Assembly (NCBI GenBank): GCA_047495785.1
Contig: JBLDXI010000010.1
Location: 434,001 to 498,000, forward strand
Source: Lepidodermella squamata
Taxonomy: Eukaryota; Animalia; Gastrotricha
Direction of reading: 5' to 3'
DNA: 64,000 nt
The notes under the pieces were generated by a model. That model was not told where the DNA came from. It did not search any database and saw nothing but the letters and a program-made list of their open reading frames with translations. A program made the translations under genes and the position numbers. Shown piece by piece: positions 1 through 61,372 of the stretch (position 1 is the stretch's first letter; each line of letters begins with the position of its first letter).

Positions 1-714
1 CGGCCACATAATAAATTTTACGTACATTCTTTCCAATAGACTTAATCCATCAATCTTCGACGGCGCGAGCGCTGATGGCATGTAACTCGGATTATCTGGA
101 AAATTTGGAACTATGGAAGCGTGGGTAGTTATGACGTAAGGTATTCCCAGTTTTTTAGCAACATTTGGACACGAAAAGCTCATCCAGTCGCAAACCAAAA
201 TGTCAGGCCGGTCATTGTCGACAACATCCTTCAGGCTGCGATTGGCGCCTTCATAGTAGAATTTAGTAAACCCCATGACCAGCTTGCTCTGGATGGCATG
301 AGTTTCTGCCTCAGAGGCTTCCCTGCCGATTTCAACCAGGAAATCTAGGGATTTTTGCTGGGAAATCGTCCCGTTCGATATGTATTCAATCGTCCCGTTC
401 AGTTGATAGTATTTGCCAAACTCGCCCGGTTTGTACCACGTTCTTGCCGCGTCGAAGAGACTTGCAAGTGCTGTGCGATGGCCACGCTTCATCAGAGCTT
501 TCGAAAGCGGTACCAACGGCTTTACGTGGGATCTTGAACACACATCCACAACAAATAAGGCATATCTGGGCCGTGCAATCAATTTCATAAGATCGGGGGA
601 GATGTTATTCATAATCTGATCCAGTTTTTCCGATTTGTAGCCTTCGATTGAACCATCGATATGCTTAATAACGAATAATAAAACAAATACAGAAAACTTG
701 TGGAAAACTGCCAT
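1..714 (-). CDS. UDP-glycosyltransferase copy 1 (5' part; runs off the window start)
   Basis: Open frame from ATG 714 to base 1, absent from the ORF track because it has no stop: MAVFHKFSVFVLLF...CSRSHVKP...KRGHRT...DRPDILVCDWMSFSCPNVAKKLGIPYV. Signal peptide and catalytic-His region align with the three other UGTs. No intron in this stretch. Confidence 0.9.
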   Translation of the reverse strand, partial: MAVFHKFSVFVLLFVIKHIDGSIEGYKSEKLDQIMNNISPDLMKLIARPRYALFVVDVCSRSHVKPLVPLSKALMKRGHRTALASLFDAARTWYKPGEFGKYYQLNGTIEYISNGTISQQKSLDFLVEIGREASEAETHAIQSKLVMGFTKFYYEGANRSLKDVVDNDRPDILVCDWMSFSCPNVAKKLGIPYVITTHASIVPNFPDNPSYMPSALAPSKIDGLSLLERMYVKFIMWP

Positions 715-981
715 TATCCTTGAGCACCAATTAAACAAAATGAAATGCTACTGCCGCCTAGGTTATGAAGGGTTGATTTGATATGCATATGCCAGCCCGA
801 AATTGGCTTCTTATGAGAGACACGTTTCTGAAACGCGTGTGCGCAGGTGACCATACTAGGAACTTACTAGGTAGATACGGAAACCCTTTTTTTCTAAAAA
901 ATAGCAATTATTTTTTTGTGAGGAACTTCTCCTGGCTTACGCTTTCCAATTTCACGTTATACAAAGTAGCGCAAAAGCAAT

Positions 982-2735
982 TTATTCTTTCTTAGATTTC
1001 GCTGATTTTCTACTGCAACAGAGGCGTTTCAAAAGCAGAAGAGCACCAACAACAACAAAGATTGGAACAGCAAATAAATCAAGATCATGCAGTCTATAAA
1101 AGGGTGCTTCATCCTCGAACATTCTTAGATGCTCCGAGCCAACAGTCATCTCCATTTCGATGATATCAACCGCCTCCTCGAAGCGTTGTGAATTGTAGTA
1201 CAAAGCCGCGCCGACTCGAGCGAGATTTTGCATCAACGTCTCTTCTTTATTGAGGAATCGACCTAGTAGCTCCGATGACTTTTTGCAAGTTTGATCCCGA
1301 ACGGAACCAGCGGTTTTGTCGATAGCAAGACCAACTCCTAACTCTGCCACCCTCATAGCGTTAACAGGTTGATCGGCGTAAATTGGGTTGACAACGACGG
1401 GCTTCTGGGCTAAAAAAGCCTCAAATAAACTTTCCATACCTCCATGGCTTATGAATAGGTTAACAGCGGGGTGGTTGAGCACTTTGATTTGCGCAACTCG
1501 CTTTTCCATTCTGAAATTGGGATAAGCTTGCAAATTTGAGAAAATCTCATCTGGAACAGATGTCTCGAGTTGTGAAGAGCCGTATGACCATAAGAGGTTA
1601 ACCGGCTGCTTCCTCTGATTGCAAAGCAGAACACCTCGAATCAAACCTTGCACGATTTCGTCCGTGGGGACGAACTGAGAACCGAATGCCATATAAATAA
1701 CGCTTTCATTACGAGAATAGGCTTCATCCAGCCATTTTAACAGCCCTTTATCCATTTCGTATATATCAGGCTCGACGATAGGGCCAAGTACATGGATGAA
1801 AGGCGACAAATAGCGAGCATACTCAAAGCCGAAGTAATTATGAATGAAGAAATGCTTGTTCCTGTAAACCGCAGTGAAATCCATGTTGTGAGCAACTCCA
1901 AGCTTCTTCCTAATCGATTCAAGTTCGTCCCCAAAAGCCTTGAAATGGTAAATCAGCTGGGGAAGCATTAGGAATTTAGCTTTGAACCGATCGAAGAAAG
2001 AAACGTCGTAGGGGCTTATTGGGGAGAAAAGGTTAGGTAGGAACGACGGAACGTCTGGCATGGTTGGTAAGTTTGAACTTCCACCAGTCAACACGAACGG
2101 TATTTGTAGTGAGCTGGCAACATCCGGACACGTCAGTGACATCCAATCGCATACGATAATGTCAGGCCGGTCTTTGTCACAGGCTTCTTTCAGGCTGCGA
2201 AAGGCACCTTCGTAATAAAGACGAACCATCTCAAGGCGCATTTTTCCGAAGATTTCCAACACTGAAATCAGGCTTCCAATTCATTCATAGAGTCTATTTA
2301 AAGAGTTGACATACTTGAAGCAGTTTTACTCTGTTTCACCATCTCAGCGGCAAATTTAGTCACTCTTGATGTGTTTTCTGGGTCGTTCGGCGTGAGGTAC
2401 TCTGGAGTGGTTTTCAGCTTGATGAATTTGCCAAACTGGCCGGGTTTCATCCATGATCCAGCTTGCTCACCAACTCCTGCAAAGGCTGTTCGATGTCCCC
2501 GTTTTATTAGAGCTTCAGACAGTACAATCATTGGTTTGGCATGAGAGCGCGATCCCACCTCAATCATGAAAAGGACATACTTGGCTTGAGAAACTAGTTT
2601 TACTAGCTCTGGAGACATGTTCCCCCGGATTTCGTTGAGTTTTTTTGATGTGTAAGTCGAGTCAGGCGAAGATTTCTCTGATGAGGCGCAAGCAAGCCAG
2701 ATGCATAGCAATCCAATAATGGCTGGCTGCTTCAT
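982..2735 (-). CDS. UDP-glycosyltransferase copy 2 (exons 2315-2735 and 982-2261)
   Basis: Signal peptide MKQPAIIGLL; SRSH motif; 53-nt intron GTATGT..TTTCAG (2262-2314, phase 1); UGT signature VAQIKVLNHPAVNLFISHGGMESLFEA..PIYADQ; C-terminal TM helix and di-lysine ER motif KSKKE. Confidence 0.93.
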
Positions 2736-2963
2736 TTTCTCGAAATTCAATCGAAAAGCAAAGGATTAATACTTGGGCCGCCTAGAAGGATGATTGGAAT
2801 ATTACTGATGTTGTACTTTCAGAGCCTAACGATACTACTATTTCGTCAAATGGCATGACAGGTTGCTCATTATAGGATATTTCCCTGTTTGCCTCAGATT
2901 ACAGTTATCACTCGTCGTCTGCTATCACAGCATGTCAAAAGCCGCATTCATTTAGACTGTTCA

Positions 2964-4887
2964 TTATGCTTTCTTTACTTTGCTGCGGTGAATAGAAGAT
3001 AATTTGCGGATAAACCAAATGAAAGTAATCATAAATGCCACCGGTATCAAATAGAGGTCTAAATCATGAAGCCGGTAAAAGGGAGCTTCATCTTCAAACA
3101 TTCTTAAATGACTTGATCCGATCGTCATTTCCATTTCAATAATGTCAATTGCACTTTCGAACTTCTGAGCGCTGTAGTAAAGCGCTCCGCCAGCTTGCTG
3201 CAGATTCCGCATAAAAACCGGATCTTTTCCTCGAAACCGGGATATCAAATCATGTGATTTTAAGCAAATTTCCTCCTCAGTGATCGGGCGATCTGCAGTA
3301 GAATAGAGAACCTCGGCTAAACCAAGCTCCTTCGCTCTCATGCTTGTCAGAGGCTGGTCGGCGTTGATTGGATGCAGCAGAAGAGGTTTGCCGGCAAGAA
3401 TCGCCTCGAACAAGCTTTCCAGACCACCATGATTGACGAATAAATGTACCGCAGGGTGATTGAGCACCCTGATTTGAGCAACGCGCTTCTCCAACCTGAA
3501 ATTAGGATGATTCACCAGATTGCTCGGAACTGCGTAATCAAGCAACGCATCGCCGTAGGACCATAACAGGTTAACCTTGAATTCTTTGTTCCTACCGCAA
3601 AGCAGTAGACCATTTATCAAGCTTTGCATAGTTGCATTTGTTGGCATGAAAAGCGAACCGAATGCCATGTAAATGACGACTTCTTTCCTAGAATGCACAT
3701 CGTCTAACCACTTCAGAAGACCTTGGTCTACTTGATAGATATCCGGCTCGATTATTGGCCCGAGTACATGGACAAACGGTGAGATGTAACGTGCGTATTC
3801 AAAGCCGAAGTGGCTATGCACGAAAACGTGCTTATTCCGATACGGAACTGTTGGATCTATGTAATCCGGTATGCCTAATTTCGCGCGAACAGCTGATTTC
3901 TCCCCAAAGGTCGGGTACAACCAATAAAGCATGCGTAGCGGGAAAATGAACTTGGCGTAGAATCTCTGGTAATACGTTGCTTCAAAAGGGCTCGCGGCGG
4001 TAAAAGGGGTCGGAATGAATCTTTGAACCCCAGGTATAACCGGAAGAATTGAAAGTGATGCAGTCGCGACGTAAGGGATGCCGAGTTGATTGGCTACATC
4101 TGGACAGGTCGCAGACATCCAGTCGCAAACCATAAGATCAGGCCTGTCGCTTTCACATGATTCTTTCAAGCTCCTGAACGCACCTTCATAAATAAGTTGA
4201 ATCCCCACGATTTGGAATTTCATAGCTTCCTCGAACTCTAAAAGTTCAGATCGGTCAATTATTGGAGACGTGCCGTATAGAAAGGGCCCTTATTACTTAT
4301 AGCCCTTATAGCCTAATATGAATCTGACAAAGGGGAATTGTGAGTGCACATTTTTTACAGCGTAGTCTCACCCCAATTGTGTGACGCAACAAAAACCATA
4401 AGAGCCTTTTCTGCGCGGCACGTCTCATTTTTATCTGAAGGGGTATTTCCGGCTTACGTGTATGATCCTCAGGTAGCTTGTTGATTATCGCAGAGATTTC
4501 AGATTTGAAGAAATCGGTGAAATTCTGGCGGATTTCTTTATCCTTTCCCGGGGTCTTGTATTGATCGGTTAGTTTAAGGTGGAAAAATTTATCGAAATCC
4601 CCCGGTTCGAACCATGAAGCTGCTTCGTCGAAGAGAGCAGCAAATGTTGTTCGATGGCCTCGCTTCATCAGCGATTTTGACAGATAAATCATTGGCTTGA
4701 CATGCGATCGAGTGCAGAACTCCGCGACGAACATAACATGCTTTGCATCGGCGATGAGTTTCACTAAATCGGGGGCCATGTTGTGCCTGATTTGCTCAAA
4801 CTTTACCGAAGTATACGCGCCATTTCCTCCAGCGACGGAAACGATGAAAACCGTCAACATCAGTGCTATTTTAAAAGTATAGGTCAT
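2964..4887 (-). CDS. UDP-glycosyltransferase copy 3 (exons 4458-4887 and 2964-4237)
   Basis: Signal peptide, TRSH motif, phase-1 intron GTAAGC..TTTTAG 4238-4457, signature HGGLESLFEA..PINADQ, TM helix and KVKKA. Confidence 0.93.
4265..4426. mobile_element. MITE inserted in the UGT copy 3 intron
   Basis: About 29-bp imperfect terminal inverted repeats GAGACGTGCCGtatAGAAAgGGCcCTTAT / ATAAGAGCCTTTTCTGCGCGGCACGTCTC; absent from the homologous 50-nt intron of copy 4. No clear TSD. Confidence 0.75.
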
Positions 4888-7854: not shown

Positions 7855-9608
7855 TTATTCTTTCTTTACTTTGCTGCGGTGAATAGAGGATAATTTGCGG
7901 ATAAACCAAATGAAAGTTATCATAAATGCCACCGGTATCAAATAGAGGTCTAAATCATGAAGCCGGTAAAAGGGAGCTTCATCTTCAAACATTCTTAAAT
8001 GACTTGATCCGATCGTCATTTCCATTTCAATAATGTCAATTGCACTTTCGAACTTCTGAGCGCTGTAGTATAGCGCTCCGCCAGCTTGCCGCAAATTCTG
8101 CATTAAGTCCGGGTCTTTATCTCGGAACCGGGATATCAAATTATGTGATTTTAAGCAAATTTCCTCCTCAGTGATCGGGCGATTTGCGCTAGAATGAAGA
8201 ACCTCAGCTAAACCGAGCTCCTTTGCTCTCATACTTGTCAGAGGCTGGTCGCCGTAAATTGGATGCAGTAGAAGAGGTTTGCCGGCAAGAATCGCCTCGA
8301 ACAAGCTTTCCAGGCCACCATGATTGACGAATAAATGTACCGCAGGGTGATTGAGCACCCTGATTTGAGCAACGCGCTTCTCCATCCTGAAATTAGGATG
8401 ATTCACCAGATTCTTCGGAACTGCGTAATCAAGCCACGCATCGCCGTAGGACCATAACAGGTTAACCTTGAAATCTTTGTTCCTATCGCAAAGCAGTAGA
8501 CCATTTATCAAGCTTTGCATAGTTGAATTTGTTGGCATGAATAGGGAACCGAATGCCATGTAAATCACAACTTCTTTTCTAGAATGCACATCGTCCAACC
8601 ACTTCAGAAGACCTTGGTCTACTTGGTAGATATCAGGCTCAATTATTGGCCCGAGTACATGGACAAACGGTGAGATGTAACGCGCGTATTCGAAGCCGAG
8701 GTGGCTATGCACGAAAACGTGCTTATTCCGATACGGAACCGTTGGATCTATGTAATCCGGAATGCCTAATTTCGCGCGAACAGCTGATTTCTCCCCAAAG
8801 GTCGGGTACAACCAATAGACCATGCGTAGCGGGAAAATGAACTTGGCGTAGAATCTCTGGTAATACGTTGCTTCAAAAGGGCTCGCGGCGGTAAAAGGGG
8901 TCGGGATGAATCGTTGAACCCCAGGTATAACCGGAAGTATCGAAAGTGATGCAGTCGCGACGTAAGGGATGCCGAGTTGATTGGCTACATCTGGACAGGT
9001 CGCAGACATCCAGTCGCAAACCATAAGATCAGGCCTGTCGCTTTCACAGGATTCTTTCAAGCTCCTGTAGGCACCTTCGTAAACAAGTTGAATGCTCGCG
9101 ATTTGCAATTTCATATATTCCTCGAAATCTAGATGAAGTTCAGATGAGTCAATAATTGTTAACGTATTTCCAGCTTACGTGTATGACCCTCAGGTAGCTT
9201 GTTCATTATCGAAGCGCTGTCAGCTTTGAACAAATCAGTGAAATTCTGCCGGACTTCCTTATCCTTGCCCGGGGTCTTGTATTGATCGGTTAGTTTAAGG
9301 TGGAAAAAGTTATCGAAATCCCCCGGTTTGAACCATGAAGCTGCTTCGTCGAAGACAGCAGCAAATGTTGTTCGGTGTCCTCGATTCATCAGCGATTTTG
9401 ACAGATAAATCATCGGCTTGACATGCGATCGAGTGCAGAACTCTGTGACGAACATGACATGCTTTGCATCGGCGATGAGTTTCACCACATCGGGGGACAT
9501 GTTGTGCTTGATTTGTTCAAGCTTTTCCGAAGAGTACGCGCCATCTTCGCCAACGACTGAAACGATGAAAATCGTCAAGAGTAGCGCAATTACAAAAGGA
9601 TGTGCCAT
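7855..9608 (-). CDS. UDP-glycosyltransferase copy 4 (exons 9179-9608 and 7855-9128)
   Basis: Near-identical to copy 3 in exon 2; 50-nt phase-1 intron GTAAGC..TCTAG 9129-9178; signature ends PIYGDQ; TM helix and KVKKE. Confidence 0.93.
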
Positions 9609-11833
9609 TTGTTTGGCTTGTAAATATTCTGATGAGGTAGCTTACTACATAATTTTGTCAACGGTACCTGGTTTTTTTGTTATTCAGTCATCGTGCGAAC
9701 GTGTTGAGTTTTTTCCTCTTATCTTGTTTTTTATCTTAATTTCTCCGTTTTCAGCGGTGTATTTCTTCTAGTTTACGCGGAGTAAAACTCGAGTAAAGCT
9801 TGAGTAAAACGTGCGTAATTTTATATAAAAAATGAATGGCTGATGCCAAGTTGTTAGCGATGAGGCTGGTTTTTCACTTTTTAGGTTTAAATAAAATGCC
9901 CTATAACCCTTCGCCTAAATTCTCAGTCGTTTGAGCTTCCGAATGGCGTAAGGTTTGGGACACCTTCATATCACCTTGAAAAAACCCATTTTGGGTCGAA
10001 ATTAGGAAAGGGCATCCCCATAGTGTTGATCTCTCAGTTAAAGAAAGGAAAATGAAGATATTACGATTGGTTCTTGCACGGATATACCTGAACTACATAC
10101 GTTTTTGCTCATAATCATCTAATCTGTTTATAAATAGTTTATAATTTTTCGAAAAATTATTCCCGATTAACTGAATAGCTCACAATGCCATTTCCTAAGC
10201 AAATGAGGGTCCAAAATCACCCGCTATTTTTTCCAACTTTATTCGAAACCGTTTTTCGATCGCCAAAAATCAGGTAAAAATCGTAAAAATCGTAAAATAA
10301 TCGGGAATTTCCTTGCACACCTTTGTGTCGAATATCATAAATCTAGGAATCAAAACTCGAAACCTCGAAAAACAAGGTTTAGTCCAAAATTACCCTCGAA
10401 GTTTACGTACGTCTTTTCAGCAGTGACATTTCAGCAAATGAGGGTCAGTGACTTTTCATCAGCGACAAATGAGCAGTGACAAATCATCCGTGTCATGTCA
10501 GTAGTTATTTTTGATATTTCATCTTATATTTTTTCAAATTTATTATGGTTTATCGCAGTGCCATTTCGCCGCCAAAGGAAAGTTTATACTGTAACCAAAA
10601 GGTCGCATGGTTAAAGTTTGTTGAGTGCAATGATATATTATTTTGGTAAACAATTACTTTTTCATCACTCATTACTCATTAATTCGCAGACTTCAATCGA
10701 TGACTAACGGTCATTTACGCACCTTTTGACCTATATTATTCCAACACGTGAAAGCAGCTAACACATAATTAGCCACTACGTCATCCGGACTTTTTATTAG
10801 CAATCTCGTATAGCAGAAGCACGCACCTCAATAAATGACGATGATACGTCCTTGCCAACGGATGTACAAAACAGCTACTTTGTGCGATACACTATATCTC
10901 TGTCACGTGCTCATTTTTTTGGCTCGTCAAAGTGAAGTGCGAGAGTCAAAAAAAGCACGCACAAGTAACCACGAGGCTCTCTTCCAGCATCATTTTACGG
11001 CATACACCACTGCCGCCCGTTCATTATATACATAATGACAAGAAAAAATCTGTATATGTCTTGATGTATGTTTTTATAGAAAAGCTTCGGAGTGTAAACA
11101 AGGCGCTCCACTCCATTGAAGTTGCTGCTGCTGCCGCTCATTTGTCGCGGTCGACGGCGCACGTCCGAATCGCTTGGCTCAATGCCGCGGTCTTTTATCA
11201 AGTATCAAGACTAGTAGAAATTAATTCCCACCGCCTCGAAAATGTAGCGAATAATAACAGGTCAGCAGTGACGCAATTCTAGGCAAAAAAAAGTGCCTAG
11301 AGCTATTTTAAAGCCAGTTCGCACTACGATTTATCTAGCAAAAATTCGCCTGGATTAGGACTAATTTTTTCGACAATATTTTTGTTCGGCGTTTATTTAC
11401 CTTTCAAAAAACGCATCGTGCTATTCTATATCGCTCGCTAGCTCAAGTTGGTGGGCAAATAATAACGTACTATAAGTGCATCTCGCCTTCAAATGCTTCC
11501 TATATAACAAGTACAATATGTCAGCAATATAAACAAAAAAATAATGCTGTTTAGTCTCTCGCTACTACCTCGTAAAAGTAATCATCATGGCTTCTCATCA
11601 TTATCATTTTTTCTCTTCACCTATGTTCATTTCTTGTATATCTCACCTGTAAAAATTATTCAGAGAAAACCTTTTAGTTGCGCAACTAAAGTTCAAAGCT
11701 TGGCGCCAAACGCAAAAAAATGTCATTTTTGAATAATTTTTTAAAATATTTTACTCTCAAATTTTAAAATGGCCTCATACAGAATTCACGCATAATTTTA
11801 TGGGGTCCTGATGCTGTTACAAAATTAACGGTT

Positions 11834-52698: not shown

Positions 52699-55600
52699 CT
52701 AATCCGAGTCTGAATCGGACGAGGAGCCGGATGAAGACCCGGAACTTGAGCCTGACGACGATGAGGAACTGCTCGACGAGGCCGAGCTGTGGCGGGCGCG
52801 TTTCGGCTGGCCCGGGTAGTTCGCCTGGGCGGCTGATTCCTTGTCGAGGCCGCGGCGGGGCTGCGGTTCGGTTACGCGGCTGCGGACCGGCGGCGAGTCG
52901 TCGGATCGCCTCGGTCGGCTGGGCGGGCTTGGCGAACGGCGACGGGCCGGCGGGCTCGGAGAGCGGCGGCGAGCAGGTGGACTGGGCGAGCGACGACGCG
53001 CAGTACGCGGCGATCGCGACTTTGAACTGAAAGAAAAATGTATCATTAGTAAATTTAAAAATATGGCTCAAGTTTGTATTCGAAGAGATAAAACTTCAAC
53101 GGTTAAACTTAAACTAACCATGTTACTTGGGAAAACTGAATTAAAATCCGCTGGACGCGTCATTCCAATAAATTTTAACCAATTTATGTTTTTCAAAGTT
53201 TAAAAATCGGTTTTTCGCCGAAAAATGCTAAAATTTGAAACAAAGGTGAGCAGGGTTTTCCTGTAAATTTTGAGAATTTTCTAATTTTTATCTGATTTTT
53301 ACCTAGAAAAGTTCTGAAATTCTACCTAGAAATTGAGATTTCAAAATTTCCAGCTATACACAACAAACGAAATCCATTAACGAGACTTATTGAGGAACAC
53401 CATAAATACCGTAAAATACAGCCCTGGCCTGTAAATTTACAGTCCTCAATAATTTCGAATTTTAGAAACTAAAACAGAAGTTTTCTGGCCATGTTTTATC
53501 CTCAGCACTGAGCTATAATTTACAGTCTGATCTGTAAAACGAAACTTCAGCAATTTCAATTTGATAAGTTCAGGCGCCGCGATTTCAGAATGTATTTTCA
53601 ACTCACTTGGAACGAGCCACAGGTTTGCGACTCGGCGGCGAAGGTGATCGCCGTTTTCTTGCCTCGGGAGAACGGCGCCTGGGAGACGGCGATCTACGCC
53701 TCGGAGAAGGCGATCGGCGCTTTGGCGATGGTGATCGCCTTCGTTGAGGCGGAGATGGAGAGCGACGCCTCGGAGGTGGAGAAGGTGAACGACGCTTCTG
53801 CGGCGGCGAAGGGGATCGGCGTCTCGCAGGCGGCGGGGAAGGCGAGCGACGTCTCGCAGGCGGCGGAGATGGCGATCTGCGACGCTGGGCAGGCGAAGGC
53901 GACCGTCTAGCCCTACGCTGGGGCGGCGACGCAGACCTAGACCGGCTTCGCGACTGATTCCTCCTAACCGGAGACGGCGATCGACGAGTTTTACGCGGCG
54001 ATGGCGACCTACGGCGCGGCGGTGGAGAAGGAGAGCGACGCCTCTGCGGCGGTGGAGATGGCGATCGGCGCCTTTGAGGCGGGGAGGTCGACCTTGATCG
54101 ATTCCTAGCATTATTCCGACCCGCTTTAGCCGGCGAAGGCGATCTACGGACGTTGCGCTGAGGCGGTGGCGATGGCGATCGTCTTCGCTGGGGTGGGGAG
54201 GGTGACCGCGATGCAGCAGACGATTCAGTGGATGCCTTCCGGTTTCGCCGCTGTTTCGGCGATGACGACCCTGAACGACCCCGGCGACCCTGGTCCGGTC
54301 GGGTTTTAGCTGGTGGAGGGGATGGTGACCGCCGTTGCTGCCTTTTCTGAGGAGGCGGTGAGGGTGAACGGCGCCGTTGAGGCGGGGGAGACGGCGATTT
54401 TTGGCGACGCCTTGGCGGCGATTTCTCCGCTACTCGTCTCGGCGGTGGAGAGGGCGAGCGGCTTTCAGACGATTTTGGCCTTCGATCCCGACGAGGCTGT
54501 TGTCTTGGCGATCTCGACCTGGTTCGAGACCTCCTACCACCACGGTTGGTTTGCTGCTGAGGTGGAGGTGGTGGATCACGTTCAACGCTAACCCTCTCCT
54601 CCTTAATTTTGACTGGAGTATTTTCATCCCTCTTCGATTTTTTCTTCTTCGACGATTGCCGTTCGTCCTCAGACGGCGACTCCGAGTAAGATTCGGACGA
54701 ACTATCGCGGCGTTTCTTGCTCTTTTTCTTCTTCTTTTTCTCCTCCTTCTTCTCCTTCTTCACAGTTTTCTCCTGCTTGACTGATAGCGGTTGCTGCTGA
54801 TTCGAGGCGGCGAGTTGGTCAAGTTTCTGCTGCAATTGCATCGTAGGTTTTTGCGAGTTCTTCAAAACATCTCGCAATTCGTCCGTCAAACCACCTAAAC
54901 CAATGGCTGTGAAAAAATTGATGGCGAAACGAATGTTTTTCGGCGAATCGGTCGGAAAAACGCCATTGAAAGAAGCTTTCAACGTCGGATCCTGGAATCG
55001 CTCGTTCAACTTGACAACACCCATTTGTTCGGCGAGTTCCTATTAAAATAAAACAATTCAAAAATAAATAGTCCACCTTAAAATTATTCAAAAAATATAT
55101 TATTTACCTGGAACAAAATTTTGATGAAAATACGACCAGAACTTGTCGTAGTCTCCTCGGTGAGGACTATACAAGAAAAGCAAGACCAGCTGATGGCGTC
55201 TGAGAAGAACAAATGAGCGAATAATTTCGCGACATTGCGCAGCTTCATCAATTCAAGCCGGTGGCACGTGTCGTATTGATCTTTAAAAATCTGCTCGAAA
55301 AACGGCACGTATTTTGCGTTTATTTTGCAAAACCGCTCGGCGAGAAGGCCGAAAAACTTTTCGTACGTCCGCAACTGAGCCGCGCAGTCAACAATCATAT
55401 AACACAACTCCTGCTCCTGCTCCGGCTTCAGCGTCATTTTCAACAATTTATGGGCAGCTTCTTCGAAATTTAAGCTGGATTGGATTGCGAGGTAAATCGT
55501 TCGACGTAGATTGACCATGTTGACCTCGGTGTTGTCGATAATACCCTGGTCACCCTGGCCTTCTCCGCCCTCGCCTTCACCCTCTTCATCATCCTCGTCG

Positions 55601-56517
55601 CCTTCTTCACCACCCTCGCCCCCTTCACCCTCTCCGTCGTCATCGCCTATAATTTCACGCTTGATTTCCTCATATTTCGCCTCATTTTCCAGGAAATTGT
55701 CGTCGAATTTGAACACGTCCAACTCGCGCTCCTCGGAAATATCGTCCTCAAGCGACATCAAATGCGTGTATTGATCACCCTCTTCGACCAAATCCAGCTC
55801 AGAAACAACAGTAGGGTGGTCCTTGAAGTTGTCCTTTATCACAGCAAACATAACCTCAATCATATACTGCGTTCTCGGGTCGATTTGCGCCTCGTGTAGA
55901 ACCGCGCGTAACCGATCGGTGATTGCGACTAAACCACGCGGTGAGACAACTTTCAACCGGGCGCCGCACTCCTTGAGGAAGGCAATCGCAACTTCAACCG
56001 AGTCATCAGTCGGCTGTTCGAGGAGTAGCATCAAAATTTCAAGGGCGAGCAACTCGTGCGCCACCTGTTGATTCACCAAATGCGCGACGAAACGCGTCGA
56101 TGAAAGACACAAATTTTTATCACGACGCTTGTAACCCTTTCGGAAGGAGATGATCAAACGCCGAAGTAGAAGCTCACCAATTGCCGGGAATTTCGTGTTT
56201 ATCACAGCGACTAAAGCCGCAAAAACGTTAGTATAAGTCGGCGAGAAGGTCTGGCATTGAATGAGAGACCGCGCGAGTAACCCTCGGCCTCGAACCAAAT
56301 TTTCGCCGAATAATTCACGGATGACATTTGTGATATTAGGCGTGTTGACTTTGTTAACAAAGCCGTGGATTGATTTTTTGAGCGCTTCCCATGACAAGCG
56401 TTGGTATCCGACGCCTGATTTGTCGGCGACCTGCTGCTGCATCATCATTTTCAGCTTCATGGGCGGAATGTAAGCGCCGCCACTGCGCGATAACAAATCC
56501 TTCGACGAACTGGCCAT
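52699..56517 (-). CDS. CWC22: Pre-mRNA splicing factor CWC22 (MIF4G + MA3 + RS tail); exons 55108-56517, 53607-55039, 52699-53026
   Basis: [48 protein letters not shown]|[24 protein letters not shown]; junctions in frame. Confidence 0.97.
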
Positions 56518-56674
56518 CTCTGATTTGATTTTATCAATTAAAATCACCTAGAATCGAAAATAAATTATTAGTGAAATTTCAAGAAAGAAAGGAAAGTCTC
56601 AATTAAAATATTTGATGATCAGTTAAACTGCAGAAAATTAAGAGAAAATGTATTTTTTTCTCCTCAGTAAAATC

Positions 56675-57060
56675 AAAGTGTCAAAATTTGTGAAAAATCG
56701 GATGGGATATAGTGAAATCATCACCAAATTATTGAATTCAGTACCAAACATCATTGAAATTCGTACCAAATTATTCCAAATAGTTCCAAATCCCCAATTT
56801 GAAGACCCAGTCTTCAACCCTAACCTAACCCTAACCCTAACACTAACCCTAACCAGTTGAAAAACGAATATAATGGTTAGGTATTGAATTAAATGAAATT
56901 TGGTACCGGCGTAAGATTTTCCCAAATCGGATTGCCATGAAGGCCCTGATACGAGGTGAATTGGTTTTTGTTATCAGTAGTAACTGACAAGAGCAGTGGA
57001 TTAAATACTCTTCGTCTTTTCTAGAGCCAAATTCTTCGTCATTAGAGACAACAGACATGT
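56675..57060 (-). pseudogene. Duplicated 3' fragment of PMS1, interrupted by a MITE
   Basis: Matches the last about 45 codons of PMS1 (SVVSNDEEFGSRKDEEYL.. through NPIFHKF*) with indels. Confidence 0.85.
56704..56923. mobile_element. 220-bp insertion with a 9-bp TSD (Mutator-like MITE) carrying (CCCTAA)n-like repeats
   Basis: aaatcggat duplicated at 56695-56703 and 56924-56932; GGGA..TCCC ends; the empty site is visible in the parental PMS1 copy near 58841-58850. Confidence 0.8.
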
Positions 57061-57069
57061 TTGCTGAAA

Positions 57070-58652
57070 TTACACCGTAGGCTTTTGCGAGTTCGTGAAA
57101 ATATCTCGCAATTCGTCCGTTATACCAACTAAACCGATGGCGGTAAAAAAATTGATGGCGAAACAAATATTTTTCGGCGAATCAGTCGGAAAAAGGCCCT
57201 TGAAAGACGCCTTTAAGGTCGGATCCTGGAATCGCTCGTTCAGTTTGACAACATCCATTTTTTCGGCGAGTTCCTATTAAAACAAAACAAAAAATAAGAA
57301 ACAATACTTTATATGACAAGAAATCAAAATATTCATTATTGAACTGAATTCATTGAATGTTTGCATCAAAGTATTCAAATTTGCAAAATAAACGGAAGAA
57401 CGAACTAGTCCGCCTTGAAATTCAATACACTGTAAAAAATCTCTGGCTATATATCCGCTAATTAGCCACTCGAGCCCATATAGTTGTTTGGATAAAAACC
57501 CCCCATAGAACCTCCTATTTAGCCCTTCAAATTATTTTACGCGGGCTATTTACCCAAATGAAATTATTTTGGGTAATTAACGAAAAATGTGTATTTTAAA
57601 ATGAGCAAGGCTGCTGTTTTGCGCAACGTTTCTTTTCTCACTCTCGGGCCAAAAACATCGCTATCGCAGTCCCATATTAAATGGGTCCCCCACAGAGTAG
57701 CAGGCTTCAAATAAAGCAGAGAGCAACAAATGGTGCACACTTCAGACCAAATGGCTTCAAAGCACTCCCATAAAAAGAGTAAAATGAAGTATTAAGCAAT
57801 GACCACCATGTTTTGGAATTAATGCTATTATTTTACTTAGAAGCCATTTTTTAATTTTGCTTTTAGGTCATGGTGCTTTGAAGCTTTTGCTTTGAAGCCT
57901 GTTACTAAATTTTCCCTACTTTGTAGGGGACCCATATTAAATGGGTATGTTTCATCCTGTAATTATCATTAAAGCAAAATATGGAACATTAATTGGATTC
58001 CTCTCAAAGTTAAATATATTTGGCTATTTATCCTATTTTATTCGAAATTGTGAAACAGTAATTTCCCAAAGTGGCTAAATACCAACTGCTATATAGCCAG
58101 AGATTTTTTACAGTGTATGGCTTGATTACTCAAGTTAATGAGACTTACCATGAATAAAAGCTTGATAAAAATACGACTAGAACTCGTAGTGGTTTCCTGG
58201 GTGAGAGTTATACAAGAAAAACAAGACCAGCTGATGGCGTCTGAGAACAACAAATGAGCAAATAATTTCGCGACATTGCGAAAATATATCAATTCATGAC
58301 GGTGACACGTGTCGTACTGGTCTTTGAAAATCTGCTCGAAAAACGGCACGTATTTCGCATTGGTCTTGCAAAACCGCTCGGCGAGAAGGCCAAAAAACCT
58401 TTTGTAGGTCTGCAACTGAGCCGCGCATTCAACAATCATATAGCACAGCTCTTGCTGCTGCTCCGGCTTCAGAGTCATTTTCAACAATTTATGCGCAGCT
58501 TCTTCGAAATTTAAGCTGGATTGGCTGGCCAGGTAAATTTCTTGACGTAAATTTACCATGTTAACCTCGATGTTGTCGACAATACCTTGGTCATCGAGCT
58601 TGAGCACGTCCGATTTGGGTCCAGTTTCAGAAATATCGCCCTCAAGCGACAT
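57070..58652 (-). CDS. MA3-domain-only CWC22 paralog, 235 aa (exons 58149-58652 and 57070-57273)
   Basis: ATG in the same upstream context as CWC22 (TCAGAGATG); intact donor GTAAGT (58148) and acceptor TTAATAG (57274) at the homologous phase-0 position; no internal stop. Expression unknown. Confidence 0.7.
57428..58115. mobile_element. CAC-terminal MITE (CMC/EnSpm-like) with a nested CCC..GGG element at about 57671-57945
   Basis: TA|CACTGTAAAAAATCTCTGGCTATATA ... TATATAGCCAGAGATTTTTTACAGTG|TA; inner inverted repeat cccatattaaatgggtcccccacagagtag / ctactttgtaggggacccatattaaatggg. Confidence 0.85.
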
Positions 58653-58826
58653 CTCTGATGCTATTTTATAACTTAAAATAACCTAAAATCGAAAATGAAT
58701 TATTAGTTAATTTCAAAAAGAAAAAAGTATCGATTCGAATTATTTGAGGATCAAAATTTCAAATAAATTTTAGAAAATTAAGAAGAGATAGTTGAGAGTT
58801 TATTTTTGCTTAGTAAAATCAAAGTA

Positions 58827-61372
58827 TCAAAATTTGTGAAAAATCGGATTGCCATGGGGGCACTGAAATGAGGCAAATTGGTTTTTGTTACTATTATCAC
58901 CAGTAACTGACAAAAGCAGTTGATTTAAATACTCTTCGTCCTTTTTCGAGCCAAATTCTTTGTCACTAGATACAACTGAGCTAATGCCCAACATTCGTTC
59001 GACTTCGCCTCGGAAATATTCGATAACAACGCGAGGTCTGCAATTGGCCAATGTTGCTTTCGAGCCCGAACCCGATTGTGAGGCCATCATAGCTTCAACA
59101 ATTTCAGCGACTAATGGTCCAATTCTATCAGGGGTAGTCAGTGAGAATTCTTCAGGTAACTCAGGCGATTGTTCGACTTCGATGTAGCAACTTGACATAG
59201 GCTGACTCCCTAAATTTTCAAGTGAGGAGCTCAGCGATAATTGGCTGCCTGAATTCGAAGAATAAACGCGAAGTTTGAAACCATTAGCCTGAAGCCGCTG
59301 ATCTATGATCGTGTTGAAAAGAGGTGGATTTGACGGTTTTGAAGGCAGATTTCCAAGAAAAGCAAGTTGACTAGCCGTCAAATAGCGACCGAGTGAGAAA
59401 TTATGACCAAGCGATCTTTTAGGAACGTTAACACTAGCCATCATTGAGGCAAATAGAGCAGTTTCACTCAGCCGCTGCGCCGAACAAACAGCTAAGCGAG
59501 ATTTCAAATCGCCGATTTCTTGCCGAAGAATCAGCAAAATGAAGCTGTGACCTCTTGCCAGTTTAAATCTGCCAATTTTCGCCCATTTACCGTCATTAGA
59601 AGTGTTTTTCAGTCGTTTTGGATTAATGAGGGAATGGCGAAGTTTAACCAGCCAATTATTTGAGCCGATACCTTCAGCCTCAACATCAGGTCGGCTCCCA
59701 ACTTTTTCTCTCAGATCGTCGTCAACCAAAATACGCCGTTTCGTCGCCAATTTTTCCGACCGTTTCTGAAGAGCGGCTGCTAATCTCTGACTCAAAGTAG
59801 GCGCTGATGACTCGGGCTCAATAAATATAGAATCTTCGTCGGCTGATTCTTCTTGCGCGTCGATGTCACGTTTTCGATGAGTTTCGTGAAGCTGGGACAA
59901 AGATAAGGCCCAGTTCGAAGTTGCTGGCCTAGCTGCCGGAATTTCTTGCCTTGGCTCGATGATATTCACGGGTTGAATTTGCGGACCTAACGCGCGACCT
60001 CTGCTCCACTCCAAGGCACTGAATCGAGCTGGATTAGGCTGGACGGACTCTTTCTCAAAACCCGCATCGTCTTCAATTTCTTCTTCTTCATCCGTATCCT
60101 CCGAAATTCGATTTCTTTTCTGTTTCTTCTTTTCGATCGCAACTTCAGGGTTCTCCCAGAATTGAACATCGTCCTCTTGAATCGACCTTTTCGGAGCAAT
60201 CCGATTGCTGGACGAAGATAAAACCGGGGTAGAATTCACCGCAACTTCGCTGGTATTACCTGCGATAAGAAATTCTGTGATTGCCTCTTTGATGGCTTCC
60301 AGAATCGGCTCTTTGCCAGTTCCGAAGTAAACTTGCTGTTTAGCCACATCAACGTTCGCATCGAGAGAATTCCTCGGAACTGTTAGTTTCACACAGCCGA
60401 GAGGAAAACCTGACTTCGCATATAGGCCACTCTCCGAATAAGCAGATTTTACGACTGATGTTAAATCTTTGTCGCGAATCGGGCGATTATTCACACAGAT
60501 GAAAAGAGAATCGGAGGATGAGCGGAAAAGCAGAGATTGTCGATCAGCAGATATTCTTCCTCGAGGTAGGTAACATTCCAGGGCGAAACCAGGTTCCCCA
60601 AGCAGCTCGTCCTGTTTGAGAGCGTGGAAATCACTTGCACTAATAAGTGGCCCTCCAATCAGTGCCAAGACGGTGGGAGCTGTAAATCCGCTGGCGGTCT
60701 CCCACAGAGTAGTTGGCGAAGGACTAGCATGTTTCAACGAAATGCGGCAGTTAAGCCGACACAATGAGAGACTAGCAACGATCGCTCGACATTGAGACAA
60801 GGTATCTCGACCACGTTGCTTTGACTTAGCGTAATATTCCCGTCTGACCGGTAATGGTTGAAAAAGTTTGCTGACCAAGACCACAGTTCCGGATTGCATG
60901 GCAACAATACTCGGCGAGCCAAACCTGCGAACTGATCGGTCAAAGACGTACCGTCGCCCGTTTGGTTCTCCGGGACAACAAGTTGCAATAGTGAGCTGAC
61001 CGGCTACAGTGGCGATTGATGCTGCAGAAACGAGAAATTATTTCGAGCAAATCAGGCGAATAGAGAATTACCTAACGCCTCCCCGCGGAAACCATAAGTT
61101 TCGACTTTCCCTTCGACTAAATCCGCAGCTGATTTAGCTTTGGATGTGCAATGATGTTCCCCAATCATTGACATTGAATCTTCAGGAATCCCACATCCAT
61201 TATCGGCTACCTCAATAACGCCGATACCGAAATCTTCCAACTTTATTGTAATTCGAGTGGCGCCTGAATCTAGAGCGTTCTCTGCCAACTCTTTAACAAC
61301 AGAACTTGGACCAACTACAACTTCCGTTGAGCCAATCAAACGAATGCATTCGGCATCTAGCTTGAGCAGCAT
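58827..61372 (-). CDS. PMS1: MutL homolog, PMS1 type (exons 61072-61372 and 58827-61021)
   Basis: GHKL ATPase motifs VVKELAENALDSG, DNGCGI, TYGFRGEAL; PMS1-type WSRG, CRPRVVIEYFRGE and CPHGNP; no DQHA endonuclease motif and no MLH1 FERC end. Confidence 0.85.

Follow-up and report, generated by a model that had tools for sequence, protein, structure and literature searches.

The 64-kb window analysed here (64 000 nucleotides (nt) of contig JBLDXI010000010.1 of the gastrotrich Lepidodermella squamata) contains a short duplicate of the splicing factor gene CWC22 upstream of the complete gene. All coordinates are positions in this window. The MA3-only duplicate is referred to as the copy and CWC22 as the parent; both lie on the minus strand, where the gene order is MutL/PMS-like gene, copy, full CWC22 parent. 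Classified by its sequence, the copy is a CWC22-derived MA3-only paralogue, which agrees with CWC22 in the MA3 domain and departs from it in MIF4G and tail, and it probably represents a young gene rather than a dead copy. The features of the copy and of the parent are as follows.

58652-58149, minus strand: copy exon 1, 168 codons, with the ATG fused to the codon of parent Met254, a short linker remnant and most of MA3
58148-57274, minus strand: copy intron, 875 nt, GT..AG, phase 0, at the position of the parent's 68-nt intron
57273-57070, minus strand: copy exon 2, 67 codons plus TAA (57072-57070), encoding the C-terminal helices of the MA3 module
58683-58696, minus strand: candidate acceptor of the copy, a pyrimidine tract plus AG (58684-58683), 30 nt upstream of the ATG
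53603-56517, minus strand: parent CWC22, 948 amino acids, with MIF4G, acidic linker, MA3 and a long RS/SPSPP tail
56517-55108, 55107-55040 and 55039-53603, minus strand: parent exon 1, intron (68 nt) and exon 2

The frame of the copy comprises 235 codons plus TAA, the predicted protein ends in QKPTV, and MA3 is its sole Pfam domain (PF02847, E 2.3e-20), with no match to MIF4G. The phase-0 intron is placed at the same codon in copy and parent. The acceptor of the copy is homologous to that of the parent (AG 56549-56548), is a candidate spliced-leader acceptor and, as seen in the alignment, was retained from the parent together with the 30-nt leader that precedes the copy ATG and starts at 58682. 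An initial annotation, made from the letters alone, had described a 235-residue two-exon frame with intact splice sites and an acceptor and ATG context kept from the parent; the frame coordinates, the GT..AG intron and the alignment of acceptor and leader bear this out. Its feature end at 58683 was corrected, since this position is the G of the acceptor AG and the leader begins at 58682. In the parent, MIF4G was matched at residues 49-227 (PF02854, E 6.9e-14) when the N-terminal 253 amino acids were scanned alone. Scanning the whole 469-residue product of parent exon 1 listed MA3 only (E up to 0.01) and missed MIF4G.

The duplication was mapped by BLASTN of the two units against each other and by global alignments. 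Residues 21-235 of the copy and 323-537 of the parent form a gap-free alignment with 85% amino acid and 87-88% nucleotide identity. The paralogous blocks (copy unit versus parent unit) and the neighbouring features involved are listed below.

58985-58841 versus 57059-56924: 3' end of the PMS-like gene
58850-58653 versus 56703-56518: intergenic region, acceptor and 30-nt leader
58652-58630 versus 55758-55736: start of the frame, from parent Met254
58593-58149 versus 55552-55108: MA3, exon 1 part
57290-57060 versus 55056-54826: MA3, exon 2 part
61372-61052 and 60899-58827, minus strand: open reading frames of the MutL/PMS-like gene, with PF01119 (DNA_mis_repair) and an N-terminal ATPase-like frame at 61372-61052
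58827-58985, minus strand: intact 3' end of the PMS-like gene, where the duplicated unit has its left end and from which the fragment at 57059-56924 derives
56924-57059, minus strand: degenerate PMS fragment, about the last 50 codons of the PMS-like gene with 1-nt and 6-nt deletions, now in the 3' untranslated region of the copy
56518-56703, minus strand: parent's intergenic region with acceptor and 5' leader, homologous to 58850-58653 (p-distance 0.15, 9 gaps)

The paralogous blocks and the junction, which lies at about 57060/57059, establish a DNA-level tandem duplication of about 2 kb in a same-strand cluster (MutL/PMS-like, CWC22), and not an insertion. The duplicated unit runs from the last exon of the PMS-like gene through about codon 543 of CWC22, and the copy is the upstream unit. 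The copy had been annotated as inserted upstream of its parent; the location was right, the insertion was not. Since the intergenic region with the acceptor was part of the duplication, the upstream unit inherited everything needed for its expression from an existing transcription unit. A processed retrocopy was ruled out by the conserved position of the parent intron, the tandem arrangement with the parent and the co-duplicated flanks. The end of the MutL/PMS-like gene lies about 143 nt from the acceptor of the copy, an operon-like spacing that was reproduced for the parent by the duplication.

The duplication was followed by in-frame deletions of MIF4G and of the acidic linker, both flanked by microhomology. 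The start of the copy reads CAGAGATG joined to TCGCTTGAGG, where the parent has CAGAGATG followed by GCC at its start and TTTGATG followed by TCGCTTGAGG at Met254, with GATG common to both. The first deletion thus removed 759 nt in frame between GATG microhomologies and joined the start codon to Met254, and the 253 deleted codons contain the entire MIF4G match of the parent. The second removed 150 nt in frame and with them the acidic linker; a net +3 nt indel lies nearby. The fusion of the ATG to an internal methionine through GATG with loss of all of MIF4G, and the second deletion, had both been recognised in the initial annotation. A stop after QKPT, named there as the cause of the loss of the RS tail, did not hold up: the protein ends QKPTV, and the tail is absent because it was never copied, the end of the duplicated segment being about 4 codons past the stop. 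The TAA is a CAA>TAA change at parent Gln539, about 10 nt ahead of the junction; without it, the frame would stop about 22 codons further on, within the PMS fragment.

Three public sequencing runs, all in the form of contigs, were available for comparison with the window. Run X1 behaves as genomic DNA (intron and repeats are present), and run X2 is a cDNA run of another study, dated 2015, with a SMART cDNA adapter in a loose end. X1 matched the copy region at 100% identity, including a contig (56898-57454) across the duplication junction. A 695-nt contig of X2 matched 58448-58149 plus 57273-56880 with no mismatches, also spanning the junction, and skips exactly 875 nt bounded by CT..AC on the plus strand, which is GT..AG on the gene strand. 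The copy is therefore transcribed and its intron is correctly spliced, as predicted; the joint 58149/57273 is the one at which a paralogue-specific RNA check had been proposed. The 68-nt intron of the parent is likewise spliced out in X2. A further X2 unitig (56909-56599), identical to the window and with the depth of the copy exons, ends about 50 nt before the parent acceptor, which implies either an mRNA with a long 3' untranslated region or part of a read-through precursor. As a mark of the poly(A) site of the copy, the SMART adapter at 56599 was dropped, its orientation being uninformative. Word depth in X2 was about 20 over the copy versus 60-78 over the parent, depth being a poor measure of expression.

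The locus also carries three elements resembling miniature inverted-repeat transposable elements (MITEs), none assigned to a strand.

57425-58118: MITE-like element in the copy intron, bounded by perfect terminal inverted repeats of 29 nt each, at 57425-57453 and 58090-58118
57671-57945: second MITE, nested in the first, with 30-nt inverted repeats that are 83% complementary
56704-56923: downstream MITE, 220 nt, high-copy, with imperfect terminal inverted repeats

The copy intron is thirteen times as long as that of the parent, and X1 word depth over its MITEs was 500-3300, versus about 84 for flanking single-copy sequence; the expansion of this intron by transposable elements, as first described, consists of a MITE, gained after the duplication, with a second one nested in it. 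The downstream MITE is flanked by a 9-bp direct repeat (ATCCGATTT, a target-site duplication, at 56932-56924 and 56703-56695) and was inserted after the duplication. It contains a TTAGGG-like repeat tract at about 56855-56815 and is among the most abundant sequences of X1 (word depth 6700-9000 versus about 84 for single-copy sequence).

These data were also used to weigh an assembly artefact, that is, a haplotype mis-join or a collapsed repeat mimicking a duplication. The parent allele of the window is about 2% off X1 and X2, whereas neither run departs from the window in the copy region, and the switch at the downstream MITE hints at a mosaic assembly near 56720-56898; contigs of two studies nevertheless span the junction and the copy exons without mismatch, one of them a spliced cDNA, and the difference between copy and parent, 13% of sites as well as domain content, is far too large for alleles. 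An artefact is thus given next to no probability.

Selection on the copy was estimated over 215 codons shared with the parent. By the Nei-Gojobori method, non-synonymous divergence (dN) was 0.075 and synonymous divergence (dS) 0.469, a ratio of 0.16, where about 0.5 is expected for a neutral copy and a constrained parent; differences at codon positions 1, 2 and 3 numbered 20, 13 and 50. Amino acid changes were polarised by an outgroup CWC22 gene on metagenome scaffold L001, which placed 26 on the copy branch and 2 on the parent branch, with 4 ambiguous (26 of the 28 polarisable changes on the copy). A free three-branch codon model was degenerate and assigned all synonymous change to the parent branch, because synonymous sites against L001 are saturated (proportion of synonymous differences, pS, 0.9; G+C content at third codon positions, GC3, 0.28 versus 0.58). 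It was replaced by an equal-age codon maximum-likelihood model with the same neutral branch length for both paralogues, imposed because they share one age and one locus. Under this model dN/dS (omega) was 0.37 for the copy (profile interval approximately 0.22-0.62) and 0.022 for the parent; likelihood-ratio tests rejected both a copy omega of 1 (twice the log-likelihood difference, 2dlnL, 15.0; p = 1e-4) and a copy omega equal to that of the parent (2dlnL = 25.1, p = 5e-7). The copy protein evolves about 17 times faster than that of the parent, at about 0.4 of the neutral rate.

The replacements were milder than random single-nucleotide changes (mean BLOSUM62 score +0.22 versus -0.34, P = 0.027). 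The 705 nt of the copy contain no stop or frameshift, and its coding indels (-759, -150, net +3) are all in frame; the chance of an open frame under neutrality was 0.7-2% at 0.15-0.2 substitutions per site and 6% at 0.1. An internal neutral control is available in the co-duplicated 137-nt PMS fragment, which has lost 1 nt (a frameshift) and, in a second deletion, 6 nt, and into which a MITE has inserted. Gene conversion was rejected as the source of the low dN, as the differences are evenly spread (longest identical run 30 nt, P = 0.76) and conversion would in any case not lower dN/dS. Judged by these codon comparisons, the copy is under weakened but real protein-level constraint. The comparison of dN/dS between the two MA3 regions, suggested at the outset as a check on function, thus gave a pairwise ratio of 0.16 and a copy-branch omega significantly below 1, and the paralogy, the junction, the deletions, the spliced cDNA and the branch omega together support the original description of a new gene formed by duplication.

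The structure of the predicted protein was modelled with AlphaFold from a 47-sequence alignment. The model (pLDDT 90) has eleven helices over residues 27-230 and a disordered N-terminus, and can be superposed on MA3 as resolved for CWC22 in structures of human spliceosomes (Bact, C and P). In Foldseek searches it covered the whole chain where only MA3 is resolved (e.g. 6zym_T, target-normalised TM-score 0.95, root-mean-square deviation 1.3), and a profile search of solved structures matched CWC22 chains at E 1e-145. The predicted product, as modelled, shows a disordered 25-residue N-terminus and a complete CWC22 MA3 helical module; given this fit to the full MA3, duplication and deletions thus cut out an entire structural module.

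Relatives of the copy were sought in protein and metagenome data. Its MA3 is 85% identical to that of the neighbouring CWC22 and 55-59% identical to that of human CWC22; compared with CWC22, the copy is devoid of MIF4G (the binding site of eIF4A3 and CWC27), of the acidic linker and of all of the RS/S-domain tail, its rate of evolution is about 17 times higher, and near-invariant residues are replaced in it. The closest relative found was P0121 (86% amino acid identity over the 469-residue exon-1 query) on the 23-kb scaffold L001, where CWC22 is located at 9064-11472 and has no intron as far as it aligns; a PP1-type phosphatase encoded on the opposite strand takes the place of the PMS-like gene as its upstream neighbour. 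Between the lineages of L001 and the window there have been changes in intron content (a gain or a loss), in composition (GC3 0.28 versus 0.58) and in synteny. Two metagenome scans for orthologues of the copy yielded none in the first and only 55% relatives in the second. Short MA3-only database entries mostly look like fragmentary CWC22 models. Unlike the other short matches, P0047 (Steinernema carpocapsae, 345 amino acids) does not resemble a truncated model: it has a basic non-CWC22 N-terminus and a diverged MA3 (49% identity), and may be an independent MA3-only derivative of CWC22.

Further observations concerned the parent. Its C-terminal 400 amino acids (53603-54800, minus strand) form an unusually long and regular array of RRRSPSPPP-type repeats, and two X1 contig versions over these repeats (0 and 16 differences in 229 nt) suggest allelic repeat variation. 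Compared over 55100-56720, the parent allele in X1 and X2 differs from the window at about 1.5-2% of sites; 28 of the 31 coding variants listed are synonymous, and the allele also has indels of 6 nt in the coding sequence (54677) and of 5 nt in the intron (55050). Over about 1.5 kb of the copy region (56898-57454 and 58090-59000), by contrast, both runs match the window exactly, the change occurring at the MITE at 56704-56923. This allele switch could be an assembly haplotype switch, a recombination block or low diversity at the copy.

The possible action of the predicted protein was assessed from published CWC22 data. CWC22 MIF4G binds eIF4A3, MIF4G and MA3 are both needed for splicing itself in human cells, and the C-terminal tail strongly enhances spliceosome association (PMC4482076). 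The MA3 domain, which sits on PRP8, contributes to the 5'-exon channel (PMC6344849), and in the BAQR complex it touches the PRP2 N-terminal hook and BUD13 (PMC10208982). If the copy is retained as a protein-coding gene giving a free-standing MA3 module, its protein would be unable to bind eIF4A3, whose site is MIF4G, and would be without the tail that anchors CWC22 to spliceosomes. With MIF4G and tail both gone, published truncations imply that an MA3-only protein should bind spliceosomes weakly. Its most likely action would be low-affinity binding of one or more MA3 partners (known in Bact/BAQR: PRP8, the PRP2/DHX16 N-terminal hook and BUD13), and the copy would serve as a modulator or decoy, or be a module drifting to a new partner, and would not replace CWC22. 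On balance we favour this account, in which a free MA3 module is retained by selection and either binds an MA3 partner with low affinity, as its modulator or decoy, or is drifting to a new one.

Several observations weigh against it. Human CWC22 340-908 (MA3 plus C-terminus, no MIF4G) showed no association with splicing intermediates and no rescue of splicing (PMC4482076). Without the equal-age constraint, branch-specific omega is unidentifiable, the only outgroup being saturated, and the flanks (p = 0.15) are less diverged than 4-fold sites (p = 0.25), so that with the flanks as neutral standard the copy omega becomes approximately 0.5-0.7. The replacements are not depleted at conserved sites (79 diverse orthologues, Mann-Whitney p = 0.57), and E152Q, G175D, R205C and G217V hit MA3 sites that are at least 95% conserved; on the alignment, this pattern fits general relaxation or changed function, not preservation of ancestral spliceosomal contacts. 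No X2 contig was found over 58449-58848, which leaves the 5' third of the frame (58449-58652) and the acceptor uncovered in the one cDNA run, and transcription could be a passive result of the position within the parent's transcription unit. Finally, there is no second MA3 on L001, the only relative found and a distant one (synonymous sites saturated, synteny different), and a word-index search of the protein database in the 129-411 amino acid range gave no orthologue of the copy (best match 60% identity).

Points of this kind fit a transcribed but functionless remnant, carried in the parent's transcription unit, spliced because its splice sites chanced to survive and decaying slowly, with its frame open by luck or after a recent loss of constraint. 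The amino acid rate, about 17 times that of the parent, and replacements that show no relation to conservation among orthologues and affect near-invariant residues are as a remnant would have them; an omega of 1 is nevertheless rejected (p = 1e-4), even if the less diverged flanks mean that omega may be underestimated, and the replacements are milder than random. Two transposable element insertions lie in the intron and one in the 3' region, yet both splice sites are intact and used despite the thirteenfold longer intron. Of the three regions on which the association of human CWC22 with spliceosomes depends, the copy has lost two, and it is absent from L001, but the frame has no stops (chance 0.7-6%), every coding indel is in frame, and 0 frameshifts in 705 nt stand against about 3 indels in 140 nt of the adjacent non-coding PMS fragment. 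We consider such a remnant unlikely, while giving it appreciable weight, and retain the free MA3 module under selection as the preferred explanation.

The initial annotation had gone further and proposed a possible natural competitor, in which an MA3-only protein takes the place of CWC22 in the spliceosome and splicing proceeds without eIF4A3 delivery and exon junction complex deposition. A complete MA3 module with a confident predicted fold and the deletion of the whole eIF4A3-binding MIF4G would suit this idea. However, human splicing itself needs both MIF4G and MA3, so an MA3-only occupant would be expected to bind poorly and to block splicing rather than uncouple it; CWC22 340-908 neither joins splicing intermediates nor rescues splicing, and several near-invariant MA3 residues are changed in the copy. 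The mutant that uncouples has the MIF4G-plus-MA3 core with a point mutation and is not an MA3 fragment, and the dominant-negative forms described are isolated MIF4G and a full-length mutant unable to bind eIF4A3, again not an MA3 fragment (PMC4482076). The competitor is accordingly regarded as very improbable.

An MA3 domain without MIF4G has a precedent as a competitive inhibitor of a MIF4G-MA3 scaffold protein in PDCD4, which consists of free-standing MA3 domains and inhibits eIF4A by competing with eIF4G. Among the weak fold matches of the copy model were the PDCD4 structures PDB 3eiq and 2zu6; sequence identity of PDCD4 to the copy is about 10% and the query-normalised TM-score about 0.43. 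Whereas PDCD4 MA3 binds eIF4A directly, CWC22 binds eIF4A3 via MIF4G, which is absent from the copy. Regulators that are truncated paralogues (microProteins, Id-type dominant negatives) also exist, as do young partial tandem duplicates, and by analogy the copy may resemble them in having arisen by partial duplication, retained a single interaction module while losing the rest, and being expressed together with its parent. Reasoning from PDCD4, the free MA3 might be a lineage-specific spliceosome regulator expressed from the transcription unit that it shares with CWC22, binding the PRP2/DHX16 hook, BUD13 or PRP8 and tuning catalytic activation or exon junction complex loading; we rate this as rather improbable.

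In the literature searched, no account of a CWC22 paralogue of the MA3-only type came up. The male determiner Mdmd of the housefly is, according to the citing paper, a neofunctionalised CWC22/ncm paralogue (Sharma et al. 2017, cited in PMC11252125); Mdmd is also present as truncated copies in tandem, for which no functional role is known (PMC11252125), and the mouse R2d2 segmental duplication contains Cwc22 (bioRxiv 10.1101/043687). Like the copy, Mdmd and R2d2 are lineage-specific duplicates of the same essential splicing factor gene, and they show that CWC22 copies can persist and gain new roles. Mdmd reportedly keeps both MIF4G and MA3. Partial CWC22 duplicates are already known, and the copy adds an MA3-only form to them.

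CWC22 is an essential and extremely conserved link of splicing to the deposition of the exon junction complex (parent omega 0.02), and the co-duplicated PMS fragment provides an unusual internal neutral control for its duplicate. Should the copy prove to be no more than a duplicate in slow decay, it would count among the ordinary by-products of segmental duplication. If it is indeed an expressed and selectively retained MA3-only protein, it would be a clean case of gene birth by partial duplication, with expression signals inherited along with the intergenic region and acceptor, and would offer a ready-made tool to ask what MA3 does alone.

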